Position numbers and translations under genes: made by a program. Shown here piece by piece: positions 6,180-12,900 of a stretch of DNA of 64,000 bases; within the stretch, counting starts at the first letter, position 1; every line of letters starts with the position of its first letter. The DNA lies in the NCBI GenBank assembly GCA_047495785.1, contig JBLDXI010000001.1, positions 496,001 through 560,000 of the forward strand, read 5' to 3'. The stretch is from Lepidodermella squamata (taxonomy: Eukaryota > Animalia > Gastrotricha). Under the pieces are notes generated by a model. It saw nothing but the letters and a program-made list of their open reading frames with translations. It ran no database searches and was not told the origin of the DNA.

Positions 6180-7823
6180 TCACAACTGTTCAATCCAGGC
6201 AGGGTTTGGCTGCTTTTTATTCGCAAACATAGGCGCATAAGGCTCGACGGGACGAGTCCATTGGTCACGAGGGGTCGTCCAAGCCTCGCCTAACGAGTCC
6301 CAGAATTGCGTTTCCGATGGAGAAAGATTATGGTTTAAAAATTCGATCGCACGACGGCTGAGTAAGGGCGCCACTACGGTAGCTGGAAGTGTCGAATTAG
6401 ATTGCTGTGGTGCTATCATAAAACTGTAGCGAGTCAGTAGACGAAGTTGACCGAATAAGCCATGCAAAACTTCATCAGCTGGAGGGTCATAAAGACGGCC
6501 GTCCAGACGAGACAGCAGAATAATAGCAAGTTTCAGTTTTCGAATAACATCGACAAATTCGCTTATGTTCGGCAAAATTTCCATCGTTTTCTTCATGTAA
6601 CCTTGAAAATTATGATGAAACTGGCTCGAATTTTTCGTGTTAGCCGTCCAAAAGCGCGTTTCATTCGGGTCCATATCAACTGCTTTCAGACGAGAGATGA
6701 ATTCTTCGACGTCATCAAAACAGTAATTCAGTAACAGCTATAATATTAATCATTAGATTTGATAAACAGATATTAAAGATAAACTAACGTATTCTTGTTT
6801 GACGTTTTGTGATGAGAGATCGCCCATGAATGGAGCTGCATTGTGACCAGGTGACCAACCTGACGGAAGCGTTCCAGAATTGAGAGCGTGATTGTTGAGA
6901 GTTCCCAAACCGGCAGATTTTGTCAAAGAACCATAGCGATAAGGCATCTGATTGTTCATGTTGTTATTATTATCTTCAAAGTCGTAACCCCCAGGTGGCA
7001 ATGGTTTGCGGGGCCAGTAGCCGCCATGCTCAGACGGTGAAACCGATGGAGATAGCGATTCCGCATCATCAAATATTTCTTGTTCTGTTGGTAGAGCAGG
7101 CTCGTCGAATAATACCTCTTCCTTCCTCCAGCCGGGAGCAGCCACGTTCACAGAATCTTGAAGTAAGGAACTCAGGGCCTTGCGAAAATTTTGAATCACC
7201 TCCTCGGCCTAGACGAAAATCACTTGAAGATAAAGAAGTAAGTAACTTATGCAAACATACTGAAAGGCGATGAACTTGGAAGATGAAGACATCAATCATG
7301 TTTTTAGGTGTTTTCGCGGCAAATAACAGCAGGTTTCTATATATTTCACCAGCGCCATGAGACATTACAGCTCTCACACTTCTAACTTCAGATAACGGAA
7401 CTGCTTCGATAAGCATCTGCGGGATGATACATGTTATAATAAATTACAATTGTTCATCTTTCTTCTTACCGCATTATCAGCATTAATAATGAAAACTGAC
7501 TCTCTGGTAAGCCTCAGGACACAATTGGTTGTTGATAACGGGCTGGTCCTTTCGGCTTCCCGAAATCGATATAAAGCTTGTTCAATCGCAGCCTCTCCTA
7601 AAATATTAAGGGGCGATTAAGGCCATCTATTATAACCAGAAGAAGACCAACCAGATAGTCTTGGAAACACATAGGTGTTCAAATGCTCGACTTGATATGT
7701 TATACCAGTCGTCGGAATGAATCCGCCCGCTAATTAAAATAAAATTGACTCATGCATGCATGGCAAATATTAGGAATTAATCAAACCATCGGCTCTGCCT
7801 CCATAAACAACAGCTCCGGGCAT
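6180..7823 (-). CDS. EPS8-like: EPS8-family protein (PTB domain plus central conserved region; no SH3 or C-terminal effector region), 6 exons
   Basis: Spliced exons give YQVEHLNTY (PTB start), YRNLLLFAAK...VFIFQV, LLNYCFDDVEEFISRL, PPADEVLHGLF and VVAPLLSRRAIEFL...FWDSLGEAWTTPRDQW..PYAPMF, all collinear with EPS8 motifs. Confidence 0.85.
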
Positions 7824-8746
7824 ATGTCAAATTAATAAAACCTAGATGATCAAAGCGAATTTTACATTCAAACAAATCCAAGCTATTTGCCACGCAAGTT
7901 TAAGGAATGCACTGCATTAACATTGTGTTGCTCAGGTTAACCAAGTTACATTATAAGGTATGCAGCTGAAGAAAAGGGGTGTACATATTTCATGCCTATA
8001 CCTATACATATAGGGCCTGCGTATAATCTGACGAAAGATGCAAGGCACCCAACAGGTCACTATTTTACACAATCAAGCGTCAAATTCACGAAAGGTTATC
8101 CTTTACCGTATTTTATTCAATACAAGAATCATTCCGCAACTCGAGTGAGCGTCAGGCTCACATGGTCAAGTCTTCGGTACGTGAAGGCTTAAAGCATCTG
8201 AACATTTCATCATTTTGCGACCAATAGAAAGATCCGAAAGATCGGGAAAGAAAAATTACGATTTTCATGAGTATATTTACGAAATTTCAAAGGTGTGAAC
8301 GCTTTGCGATCTTCCAAGGTGACTGAAAGTCCAAATGAAACAGAAACAGCAAGATCTCAGCCGGAGAAGTCCATAATTCACCACCAACACGGGGCCATTT
8401 CGCAGCGAAAGAATTCATAACTTCATTTATTTTTGAAACGAAATATTTAAATATCGTGTATTTTGTAATCTAAAATTAAGCTGAGTAATTTCACACAATC
8501 ACGATATTTAATATTTTAAAATCACGCGCGCAGGCACGTTGTCGGCGCGGCAAGTTGCGCATCGCATGGTGGGATGGGGTCGCTGCTTACTTAAGCCGCG
8601 CTTGCTGTAGCCGAGTCTGAATGTTGATCTTACCGCCTTGTAGTTTAATTGCCTTTATTCTAGCTTGCTGCAACAAATCCAGCGATTCTTTTTCAGGTAA
8701 GCGATACCTATTATTCCAATCTACTCTTGATTGCCAAGTTTTACTA

Positions 8747-8844
8747 ATGATGAAAAAAAGTTCAGAGATGACGGGCGGGGTTTGACGACGTTTTCGTTAA
8801 TCCCGCCTGCGTTGAAGACTATCTAACATCACCCACTTATCTGA
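8747..8844 (+). ncRNA. Intronic box C/D snoRNA (or scaRNA), copy 1
   Basis: Box C ATGATGA (8747), D'-like CAGA, an internal hairpin, C'-like TTGAAGA, guide CTATCTAACATCACCCACTT and box D CTGA (8841-8844), 70 nt upstream of the acceptor. Confidence 0.85.
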
Positions 8845-8999
8845 TATTTATTCGATAATATTTTATTGCTTCTGGTTTATTAATTTTCATTAAGAATTTT
8901 CTTGCGTTTTGCAGGAGCGTCTCGTCGGATGGAAACCGCCTGTAACACTTGGTAAGTTATTATTGCATTTCCTTATGCGTCTCGTGATGCCTGCTTTTT

Positions 9000-9095
9000 A
9001 TGATGAAAAAAATCTCAGAGGTTTAAGGAACAGATAGCAACGTTTTGATATCTGTTTCTTCGTTGATGACTATCTAACATCACCCACTTTTCTGA
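9000..9095 (+). ncRNA. Intronic box C/D snoRNA (or scaRNA), copy 2
   Basis: Box C ATGATGA (9000), CAGA, a hairpin, C' TTGATGA, the identical 20-nt guide and box D CTGA (9092-9095), 67 nt upstream of the acceptor. Confidence 0.88.
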
Positions 9096-9915
9096 TTTAC
9101 CTCAATTAGATAGTACTACCAATCTTTAGCGTCAGCTGGACTTAATGTTTCTCTCATTTCAGATGCGATTCTATTGCCGTTTCTCTTCGCTGATACTCAT
9201 TGATGACGTCAATTCAACCATGCTACGACGAAATTGATACTTTTTGTAATAAAATAAAATGTTTCATTTATGTGATTTATTGACTTGTGGAGTTCTGTTA
9301 CATTTGTTAAACAAAGCGCAGTGAACTATCGTATTCAGAGTAATCAATCAGTTAAATCTTATAGAGATAGTGTATAAGGGAGCATGAAGATTACAGACCG
9401 TTAAGTAGAATGATGCCGTTTACCCTCATATTATTCAAGTCACGCAAGTAGAAACGTGTCACAACCTTCAAAATCGCATCACGCGAGTTATTATAAAAAT
9501 TTTGGGTGTAGGACGTTTAACGAGCAACTTTCAATTAGAAAGTTAGAAAGTTTTCACGAACAAGAAGCTGATTCGACTGGAGAGAGAACGATTCAGGAAG
9601 AAGGAGGGATCATGCAAATTTAGCGAAGTTGCGAATTGCCTTCACACTCCATTCCGAGTAAAATAAGAAGCGGTGATATTCAGGCATTTACATCGGTCTG
9701 ATTTCATGCAAAGCCTTCGTGTCAGCTTGGGATTAAATTCAGCACTACTCCACGTTTCTATTTACAGTATTGGCGCAACTTAAATTGGATCAAATTTCAA
9801 CTTGCAAAATTTTATATTTTATATTTTGACAAAAAATTTGAGAAATTTTGAGCGAGTCAGATAATCACAGCGAACTAGGTATATTTTTGAAGATGCTAGT
9901 TAGCAAGGCCTGTTC

Positions 9916-12900
9916 TCAAGTTGACGACACATGTGTTGTAGATGAAAGTTTGCTGGCTGAATATTGCGTCAAAAGATCCCTATGATGTGATAGGAAAATA
10001 GGCCAATTAGCAAGTAGTTAATCAAACTGAAAACAATATTTTACCTAGCTGGAACGTAGCCGAACTTGGAAGATGTAGATGCCAGTGGCCACTGCCAACT
10101 ACTTTGAGATCTTAAAGGAGCTGAATAAGCTGAGCCGCGATATAGCTGGTACCAACGTGCTGCCAGGTATCTATCGACATCATAGTTGCCAGGTCGAGAG
10201 TTGAACGCACTGTAAGATGCTCGGTAATCCGGAGCAGCTTTGGAGTAAGAACTTTCTGACAGCATATTGCTTGCGGCTATTATATCAGCTGTCGAACCTT
10301 TCAAAAAGTTTCGCTGATCGTTCTGAATCGCTTTCAACCTTTCAGCACGAATGCGGGATCGAACTGAACGCAGCAAAATTACGTTAATAGTGATCGGAAA
10401 TCGGTAGTTAAATTCAGCTTACTTTCGTTCAAATCGATGTCACTGTCTTCGTCGTCGGATAGATTGGATTTGAACATGGAAGTCGGCTGATCTATTTTTG
10501 ACGCAGATCCTTTTCGTTTTTTGGATTGTCGAGACGAAGCAGTACTGGAAACATGGCCGTGATTTGCGCCGCTGTTTTCACCGACAGACTTGTTATTATG
10601 AGGGAACAGCAAATTCTGAAATTTGAAAAACGAAAACGTTAGAAATATTACAATCGAGCTACTTGAGGTTATTAACTACTCACCAAAAGCATCTGCCGGA
10701 CTTTTTTACCATTTCTACCCAAGCCAGTGCTATCGCCATCGTCTTCCGACCCTGAGGAGGCCGGCAGTAATTCCGAAAATTTCGGGAGTTTGTCTTTGGC
10801 TGCGATTGTAAAATATTAATTTTAGTTATTGTTGTGTACTTGTATTAAGGAGCCTACGCTTTCTAGCTTTCTTGGAAGCTGTCACAGTTGAAGTTTGATC
10901 AATGGTAGTAGCATCTTCCTCTTCTTCGTCAGAATCGGTCTCCTCTTCTTCTCCCTCGGAGCTTTCGGTTTCAACGTGCCGCGAAGATTTCTTGTTTGGC
11001 GTCTTCTTTTTGCTCTTCCTTCGTTTAGACGTTGAATCCTTGCTGGCGCTTTCCGTCGATTTCACTGATGCCGTATCGTCTTTGTTCCTGATAAACGTAA
11101 TTTTGATAAGAATATAGCTGAAGCATAATTTTAACTAACGGCTTTTTATTGTCTTTCGAGCTACGATGATTGATCATTTCATCAACGGTGATCGAGCGTT
11201 GAATCCCAGCTAATTCCGCCCTCTTCTTCTCCAATGAAGCTTTCTGAAAAGAATAAAAAAATTCAAATGCGAATTTTGGCGGCGGAAATGAAATTAAAGC
11301 ATTGCTTTGCCCACTATTCTTAAATTCTCAGTTTTTCTACGAAAGTTTCCCTAAATTCCTAATTTCCTTAGGATCCTTATTCCGGGACTTAGGGCATTTC
11401 AAATATCGCCTGCATTCAGAAAAGGCAGACGATATTGTTGAATTCTCGAAACGTCTCGCAGAAATATGGCTGTTCCAGTTCAGTAACTCCGTAATGCAGA
11501 TTCGTCGATCGTTTCCAGCAACTGCCCACTGAATCCCCACCGCTTTTCAAAGCCCAAACCGCTATAATTTCGCACAATTAATTTGTTTATTGCTTCATCG
11601 TCTTGTGCTGTCAAATAATGCAAACGCAGTTATGACGACGCGGAACCGAGTTCCAAAGAGACGCTTAGCCTGATGACCCAGAGCTTTATGGTCTTCCCAC
11701 TGTGGTGATGCCCAATGATAGGATAGGATAGGATAGGAACTCGTTTCTTAAATCTAAATTAGTTGATGACACAAACCTGGTTAGCAATTTTAGATTCTTC
11801 TTTAAGGATGTCCTCGGTAATTCGGCGGATTTCGTCCAGCTTTGATTTCAACTGTTGCTCTTTTTCGTTCAGTTTTCGGTCTAAATCATCCAAATCTCGT
11901 TGGCGCTTAGCAACTCGATCTTCTCGAGTCTTCAAACTGTCTTCTATTCCACCAATTCTCGCCAACGCTGTTGCTCGAGCCCGCTCGCCGTCAGTCTTGG
12001 CTTCCACCAGAAGTCGTTCTGTCTCGTCCGCTATCTTTCGGCGTGTTTCCTCTACCAACTCAGCAGCTTCTGACCGAGCCTTGCTGATTTCCAACTCGGC
12101 GAGCTGTTTAGCTGCTGCGATTTCACGCTCTTGATCTCGACGAATTTTCGACAGGTTATTCTCATGCTCTTCGTGCAATTCAGCTCTCCTCCTATCAAGG
12201 CTTATACCCATCTAAAAAAGGAAGCAGAATATGACTAAATAAGCCACCGAAGGAGCAGTCGATGTTAATACCTCAGATTCAAGAACTCGGACAGAAGACA
12301 CTCTTTGCTCGGCAGCCCTGACTTCTGCGCGCTTTGCTTCTTGCTCCCTGAAATTAGCCTCCTCTAACTCAGTTCGTAGCTTTGCCATTTCCTGAGAGTA
12401 ATCACAGAATACAGAGAGAAATCGCAGGATATAACAATAAAAATTACCGACTCATGCAGAGCTGCCATTTCTTTTCGAATGGTGGCGACACGCGTGGCGT
12501 ATTCGCTCTCAATCAGTGACTTTTCCTTCATTAGACGACGTTCGACTTCACCTTCCACATCAGCCCTTGCCGCTGCTAATCGCCTGGAAACTTCGTCCTC
12601 GCGATTTTCCAGCATTTTTTGCTCTGAGTCAACGGCTTTTGATGCCTGTGATCTCAACTGTTCGATTTTAAGGCGAGACTCCTCCTCGATTTCTTTTTTC
12701 GCCGCTTCTAGTTCTCTGGTTTGCTCGGTTTTCAGCTCAGCTTGCTTTTTAACTGATTCAGCCATTTCATCACGCAGCTTCTTTACCTTCTCAGCAGTCT
12801 CTGTTTTGAGCTGCTCTTCCTCCTTAGCATATTTCTCTTCCAGTTCTGTTTTCAGCTGCCGGATTTTTGAGTCATGCTCCTACATAGAATGAAAAAGTAG

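Follow-up and report, generated by a model that had tools for sequence, protein, structure and literature searches.

The encoding of snoRNAs in the introns of non-coding host genes is a classical arrangement. In the mammalian UHG and GAS5 genes, and in Drosophila Uhg, a short spliced transcript without a long exon ORF carries one snoRNA per intron; the snoRNAs are conserved, the exons are left to drift, and the C/D snoRNAs lie ~70 nt upstream of the 3' splice site, a spacing known to favour the assembly of intronic C/D snoRNPs. Among the methylation guides, yeast snR55 and snR40, together with the fly guides for Um1357 and Gm1359, bind the 18S rRNA at GGUGGUGGUGCAUGG; these guides methylate the equivalents of what are here numbered U1275 and G1277. 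An internal hairpin is also found in some C/D RNAs. In yeast snR70, a stem topped by a conserved loop separates D' from C' (van Nues et al., 2011; PMC3116282), and the vertebrate and fly C/D scaRNAs, such as mgU2-47 and U90, are intron-encoded C/D RNAs with an internal apical hairpin (PMC4041459).

Here, we describe a locus of the gastrotrich Lepidodermella squamata, lying in a window of 64,000 nucleotides (assembly GCA_047495785.1, contig JBLDXI010000001.1, positions 496,001 to 560,000 of the forward strand; coordinates below are those of the window). Two box C/D snoRNA-like units, at 8747-8844 and 9000-9095 on the plus strand, are present, one per intron of a small spliced host. The locus shares with UHG, GAS5 and Drosophila Uhg all of the properties listed above, but the host has only two introns, which hold two copies of a single snoRNA, and the organism is a little-studied invertebrate. 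The pair and its host are a real, undescribed example of this well-known arrangement, with a guide probably aimed at 18S rRNA. The paper collection that was searched contained no snoRNA study for gastrotrichs; the finding adds an undescribed box C/D snoRNA pair and host gene to the Gastrotricha, and leaves the understanding of snoRNAs or host genes in general unchanged.

Structure and splicing of the host gene

Only two public runs cover the locus, and both were read as contigs: X1, listed as 'RNA?', which is RNA-derived because its contigs skip the 52-68-nt CT..AC introns of the neighbouring minus-strand genes, and X2, which is DNA. The host is organized as follows:

8630-8696, plus strand: host exon 1 (5' end approximate; the joint after 8696 is GT..AG)
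8697-8914, plus strand: intron 1, 218 nt, housing copy 1 (the GT..AG joint that skips these 218 nt is seen in an X1 contig of depth 66)
8915-8951, plus strand: host exon 2, 37 nt (joints on either side in X1 contigs; two X2 differences, at 8939 and 8949)
8952-9162, plus strand: intron 2, 211 nt, housing copy 2 (X1 joint 8951/9163)
9163-9270, plus strand: host exon 3 (3' end approximate; AATAAA at 9248-9253 and 9253-9258)

Both splice joints, 8696/8915 and 8951/9163, are seen exactly in the RNA-derived contigs of X1, and they coincide with the junctions that had been predicted in an earlier note, drawn up from the sequence before any search was made. The joint of intron 2 is given as 8948 to 9162 with an intervening 'GT', which is equivalent to 8951/9163 after allowing for the T8949G variant seen in X2. 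At the 5' end, contig depth in X1 begins in the 8608-8741 bin and is zero upstream; moreover, in one X1 contig there are 23 loose letters just before 8630 that resemble the reverse complement of a template-switch cDNA adapter, and which mark a cDNA end, not necessarily the cap site. The adapter-like loose end, taken together with the zero depth upstream, places the transcript start near 8630. When inspected for a 5'-terminal oligopyrimidine, the surrounding sequence, CTTACCGCCTT, is pyrimidine-rich and interrupted, and the start position is approximate.

The host gene sits between two minus-strand neighbours, at 7000-7800 and 10045-10860, the very short introns of which (CT..AC on the plus strand) are all removed in the X1 contigs. 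By comparison with these introns of 52-68 nt, those of the host, at 218 and 211 nt, are approximately fourfold longer than is usual for this neighbourhood.

An ATG is absent from exon 1, and the sole ATG of exon 2 runs into a stop created where exons 2 and 3 are joined. With the exons read singly, the longest ORF is one of 24 codons in exon 3. As far as the single exons show, the host is non-coding, as the earlier note had maintained. Other X1 contigs span both introns unspliced (the run is presumably of the poly(A) type); as contigs do not reveal where an RNA begins or ends, the mature snoRNAs are predictions.

The two box C/D units

Each intron contains one unit built on the same plan, with a C box, D' box, hairpin, C' box, guide and D box in that order:

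8747-8844, plus strand: snoRNA copy 1, from C box to D box; boxes and guide read from the sequence (fold -33.6 kcal/mol, z -4.05)
8747-8753, plus strand: copy 1 C box, ATGATGA, followed by six A and three variable bases
8763-8766, plus strand: copy 1 D' box, CAGA
8813-8818, plus strand: copy 1 C' box, TGAAGA
8819-8838, plus strand: copy 1 D guide, 20 nt, followed by two bases before the D box
8841-8844, plus strand: copy 1 D box, CTGA
9000-9095, plus strand: snoRNA copy 2, from C box to D box; same plan as copy 1, read from sequence and folding
9000-9006, plus strand: copy 2 C box, ATGATGA
9016-9019, plus strand: copy 2 D' box, CAGA
9064-9069, plus strand: copy 2 C' box, TGATGA
9070-9089, plus strand: copy 2 D guide, 20 nt, identical to that of copy 1
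9092-9095, plus strand: copy 2 D box, CTGA

Thus, both copies have a C box of the form RUGAUGA near the 5' end and a D box (CUGA) near the 3' end. The internal boxes are also present, although D' deviates from the consensus at its second position in both copies; next to them lie the hairpin, the GUU bulge and the G-C pair that both copies have kept. In a genome search, the 20-nt guide was found in only two places in the 121-Mb assembly with up to two mismatches allowed. The D-box ends of copies 1 and 2 lie, respectively, 70 and 67 nt ahead of the intron ends at 8914 and 9162, exactly the distances that had been anticipated, and every element that the earlier note ascribed to the two introns could be located in the sequence. 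A convincing terminal stem joining C and D was seen in neither copy, there being two to three scattered pairs beside the boxes; this weakens the assignment to the C/D class without excluding it, because very short terminal stems are common among intronic snoRNAs.

Conservation of the snoRNAs relative to the rest of the gene

Of the 2268 positions at which the X2 contig aligns with the window, 49 are different (2.2% divergence). Over the gene itself (8630-9270), there are 11 substitutions and one 3-nt insertion, which are confined to the exons and the intron flanks (seven substitutions and the insertion in the exons alone): the 194 nt of the two snoRNAs are free of differences, whereas the other 447 nt carry the full complement. 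Approximately 4.8 changes would have been expected in the snoRNAs and none was observed (Poisson P ~0.008). Conserved cargo with free exons is the pattern typical of non-coding snoRNA host genes, and the lack of change in both copies while the exons vary accords with the prior description of the units as paralogous C/D guide RNAs.

Comparison of the two copies with one another by MAFFT gives identities of 19/21 from the C box to D', 31/33 from C' to D and 7/7 at the apex of the hairpin; the corresponding value for the hairpin arms is 10/29, and the flanks align no better than AT-rich sequence would. Divergence of the flanks to the AT-rich background level shows that the duplication is old, and that the boxes, guide and apex have been held by selection. 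For the apex, an in-register common 7-mer arises in 1.4% of interval shuffles.

The D'-C' hairpin

The interval between D' and C' is occupied by a long hairpin with a separate closing pair at its base:

8767 and 8810, plus strand: copy 1 closing pair, G8767-C8810, adjoining the GUU bulge at 8811-8813 and the GA of C'
8772-8809, plus strand: copy 1 hairpin stem, 16 bp, GC-rich (ACGTTTT at 8788-8794; loop CGUUU at 8789-8793)
9020 and 9061, plus strand: copy 2 closing pair, G9020-C9061, adjoining the GUU bulge at 9062-9064
9025-9060, plus strand: copy 2 hairpin stem, 12+3 bp, AU-rich (apex ACGUUUU at 9040-9046)

The fold of each hairpin surpasses that of its shuffled counterparts: none of 200 shuffles was as good for copy 1 (z -4.8) and two of 200 for copy 2 (z -3.3). 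In a sequence-only MAFFT alignment, the pairs of copy 1 land on pairing positions of copy 2, with 93% of cells paired, as against 39-57% and 0-2 double changes in slid alignment controls. In five pairs, both bases differ (two C-G to A-U, two G-C to A-U and one G-C to C-G), and in four pairs one base differs, via G:U; a sixth double change appears when one alignment gap is shifted by two columns. Neither the loop CGUUU nor the A-U pair that closes it differs between the copies. For these two paralogs, from which the covariation evidence comes, the alignment indicates that the arms are the product of compensatory divergence of one ancestral hairpin. The earlier note was right to see a structure that is kept through compensatory change; however, the arms are not 'unrelated', as it supposed, since their pairs stay in register. 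The hairpin therefore provides a clean, small case of compensatory evolution, in which an internal C'/D' stem goes from GC-rich to AU-rich with its register kept.

The base that follows D' (G8767 or G9020) can pair with the C lying three bases before the UGA of C' (C8810 or C9061, respectively), and this G-C closing pair leaves the GUU bulge and four unpaired bases before the long stem. On the basis of the box C/D rules, the D'-C' hairpin is most readily interpreted as stem I of a kink-turn formed by the internal C' and D' boxes, which would make it a known kind of feature and not a new class. Such a geometry would explain the conservation of CAGAG and CGTTGA, and a role as stem I would explain why the pairing of the hairpin has been kept and its sequence has not. 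Internal D'-C' helices were reportedly treated by Kiss-Laszlo et al. in 1998. The C'/D' motif has also been described as a K-loop lacking stem I (PMC5389607).

As in yeast snR70, a D'-C' stem with a conserved loop is here set inside an otherwise ordinary methylation guide; the snR70 loop, however, acts as an accessory guide through its complementarity to rRNA adjacent to the target, whereas the present loop lacks a convincing complement near 18S 1267 (best computed duplex -4.0 kcal/mol; a 5-bp AAAAC match found by eye is expected by chance). An accessory-guide role near the target was also assessed for the loop and for the A-rich C-D' spacer; the strongest duplexes ranged from -2.7 to -8.4 kcal/mol, and none was common to both copies. 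It is conceivable, if rather doubtful, that the invariant apical loop ACGUUUU is a module in its own right, providing an accessory contact to pre-18S rRNA or a contact to a lineage-specific protein; the pair would then install a gastrotrich-specific Gm, or hold the strand open, beside the Um/Gm pair that lies, universally conserved, at the base of the 18S head domain. Were this to be the case, both a new rRNA modification site and a new snoRNA family would be at hand.

The whole genome was also searched with a pattern of C box, ACGTTTT and C' box, giving 11 places versus three for the control. The apex was rejected as a general motif of C/D RNAs in this genome, the other nine places being without a convincing C/D snoRNA (only one of them, L077, was examined in detail). 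At the latter site, C19:2296831-2296900 (+), ATGATGA, an A-run, CTGA, CGACGTTTTCATTAAT and TGAAGA occur, and CGACGTTTTCATTAAT is identical to the apex region of copy 1 at 15 of 16 positions; the site lacks a D box, does not fold into a hairpin (z +1.2) and offers no good rRNA target, and is either a decayed relative or a chance match.

Predicted target in 18S rRNA

Guide duplexes were computed against the genome's own rDNA (pre-rRNA) and its U1, U2, U4, U5 and U6 genes. The best of them involves the following element:

8827-8837, plus strand: copy 1 guide core, pairing with 18S 1266-1276

The helix comprises 11 contiguous bp, including two G:U, and at -21.7 kcal/mol, versus -17.4 kcal/mol for the next pre-rRNA site, it is the best anywhere in the pre-rRNA and the five snRNAs; beyond it, the pairing extends less tightly to 1284 (17/19 positions). 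C8836 (C9087 in copy 2), at the fifth position from box D, faces G1267 in a Watson-Crick C-G pair, and the helix begins at position 4 with a G:U beside the predicted methylated base. The duplex energy is matched by 6/100 shuffled guides, and 40/1000 reach an 11-bp rule-compliant helix. Support is consequently moderate, in that ~4-6% of shuffled guides do as well, and we incline slightly towards the view that the guide directs 2'-O-methylation at 18S G1267. There is no second guide, because the C-to-D' spacer is A-rich and only 9 nt long.

The 18S stretch that is predicted to be bound is the same as that bound by snR55, snR40 and the fly Um1357/Gm1359 guides, but the present guide puts G1267, which is 8-10 nt further 5', at the fifth position. 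We take G1267 to be 10 nt upstream of the widely conserved Gm of the region (yeast 1271, fly 1359). Among the methylation sites mapped in model organisms, no equivalent of G1267 was found in the fly Nm sites and conserved counterparts tabulated in PMC11014333; the modification, if real, may be lineage-specific.

The rDNA unit is compact, with an 18S of 1817 nt and ITS1, 5.8S and ITS2 together spanning ~770 nt. One rDNA copy has G, and not C, at 18S 1265, the base before the predicted target (C69:75965-75984).

Working model and alternative explanations

Most probably, the locus is a short spliced host, without a long ORF in its exons, the two introns of which each release one ~100-nt box C/D snoRNA copy. 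The exons at ~8630-8696, 8915-8951 and 9163 to ~9270 are spliced together and, according to this model, each intron would free its RNA for assembly into a canonical Snu13/Nop56/Nop58/fibrillarin particle. One protein-binding kink-turn would be formed by the terminal C and D boxes, and D' (CAGA) and C' (UGAWGA) a second, for which the long D'-C' hairpin, closed by the conserved G-C pair beside the GUU bulge, would supply stem I. The guide upstream of box D, the only one that is long enough, would pair with 18S 1266-1276 and on to 1284, and this pairing would then direct the 2'-O-methylation of G1267.

It may be that the RNAs are real C/D snoRNAs of an orphan or chaperone kind, with the guide acting on an mRNA, a tRNA or another ncRNA, or steering the folding of 18S 1266-1284 without methylating G1267. 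All 20 nt of the guide are identical in paralogs that are otherwise saturated, which is more than an 11-bp helix needs, although the 17/19 pairing on 18S can itself explain conservation over this length. The moderate statistics of the rRNA target and the fact that the predicted G1267 is not a known conserved Nm site also speak for such a role, as does the overlap of the guide with the binding region of the conserved Um/Gm guides; competition between the yeast snR40 and snR55 guides has been discussed (PMC3116282). However, a genome-wide search with a wobble-aware 20-mer pattern, in which G:U was allowed, gave no target better than 18S, and its counts were no higher than those of a reversed-pattern control. 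We therefore consider an orphan or chaperone function unlikely, and retain the 18S guide as the preferred interpretation. A different explanation, namely, that the RNAs are unstable and represent decayed snoRNA pseudogenes or splicing-regulatory elements of an lncRNA, would be in keeping with the weak terminal stems, with contigs that give no direct sign of mature ends, and with the existence of a boxless fragment of copy 1 elsewhere in the genome (see below). It is very improbable, given that the old paralogs, in spite of their diverged flanks, retain all four boxes, the guide and a hairpin with compensatory changes, that neither copy is polymorphic while the exons vary, and that the units are placed at a distance from the 3' splice site known to promote snoRNP assembly.

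The earlier note had further raised the prospect of box C/D scaRNAs, in which the D'-C' hairpin and its loop would serve as a Cajal-body or WDR79-binding element, and the guide would address an snRNA. The C/D scaRNAs do carry localization signals in apical hairpins (PMC4041459), and the apex is conserved here (P ~0.014); like mgU2-47 and U90, the present RNAs are intron-encoded and have an internal apical hairpin. Nevertheless, the duplexes with U1 (-14.2 kcal/mol), U4 (-11.0), U2 (-10.0), U5 (-9.8) and U6 (-5.2) are all bulged or interrupted, and compare poorly with the -21.7 kcal/mol for 18S, such that no spliceosomal target of the guide was found among these five snRNAs of the genome. The described Cajal-body signals are the consensus cgaGUUAnUg in the fly and a G.U/U.G wobble stem in vertebrates (PMC4041459), and both are absent from both copies: the apex, A-CGUU(U)-U, does not fit the former, and the stems are mostly Watson-Crick. 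Moreover, at ~100 nt, the RNAs are far shorter than the 330-nt U90 scaRNA. In the light of these observations, we have dropped the scaRNA proposal, which we hold to be the least credible of the explanations set out here, in favour of guides that are predicted to act on 18S rRNA.

Relationship to known families and further copies

At the gathering score, the Rfam covariance models returned nothing for the whole window, in line with the proposal that this is an unannotated guide-RNA family. A permissive scan produced only sub-threshold C/D matches of 16-19 bits (snoCD11, snR61, snR56 and snR40), the last of which is a weak match of copy 2. The best weak match of copy 1 is to RF00538 snoCD11 (18.8 bits, E 1.5), membership of which is ruled out by a gathering score of 60. 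Copy 1 has the same C' box, following CUAU and guide core, CAUCACCCA, as this model; it differs in having 47 nt where the model has nine, and in having two extra nt before box D, which would move the methylated base by two.

A search of a metagenome collection with a pattern of C box, guide core and D box gave 53 matches, which were judged to be due to chance: they lie mostly in GC-rich, bacterial-looking DNA, and several have an apparent common coding motif. Only one of them, L048, has snoRNA-like boxes, yet it too is set in GC-rich DNA that looks coding, and Rfam gives no meaningful match for it. Thus, no homolog was found in this collection with the pattern used.

Within the genome, no further copies of copy 2 were found, and copy 1 is represented elsewhere by one boxless 63-nt fragment at C36:1145365-1145427 (-). 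The fragment is 95% identical to the hairpin, C' box and first part of the guide of copy 1, and has no C, D' or D box. Its single stem change converts a G:U pair to G-C, and it still folds (z -4.0). It is also present in X2 as a separate contig, and may be a stray copy or a repair patch of the snoRNA.

Spliceosomal snRNA genes

The spliceosomal snRNA genes of this genome are highly multi-copy and partly arranged in tandem arrays (C25:47161-107259 and C15:3264183-3290274, and also on C12 and C29). There are at least 47 matches for U2, many of them on C15, at least 31 for U6 and at least 42 for U1, and U5 recurs approximately every 2374 bp on C25.
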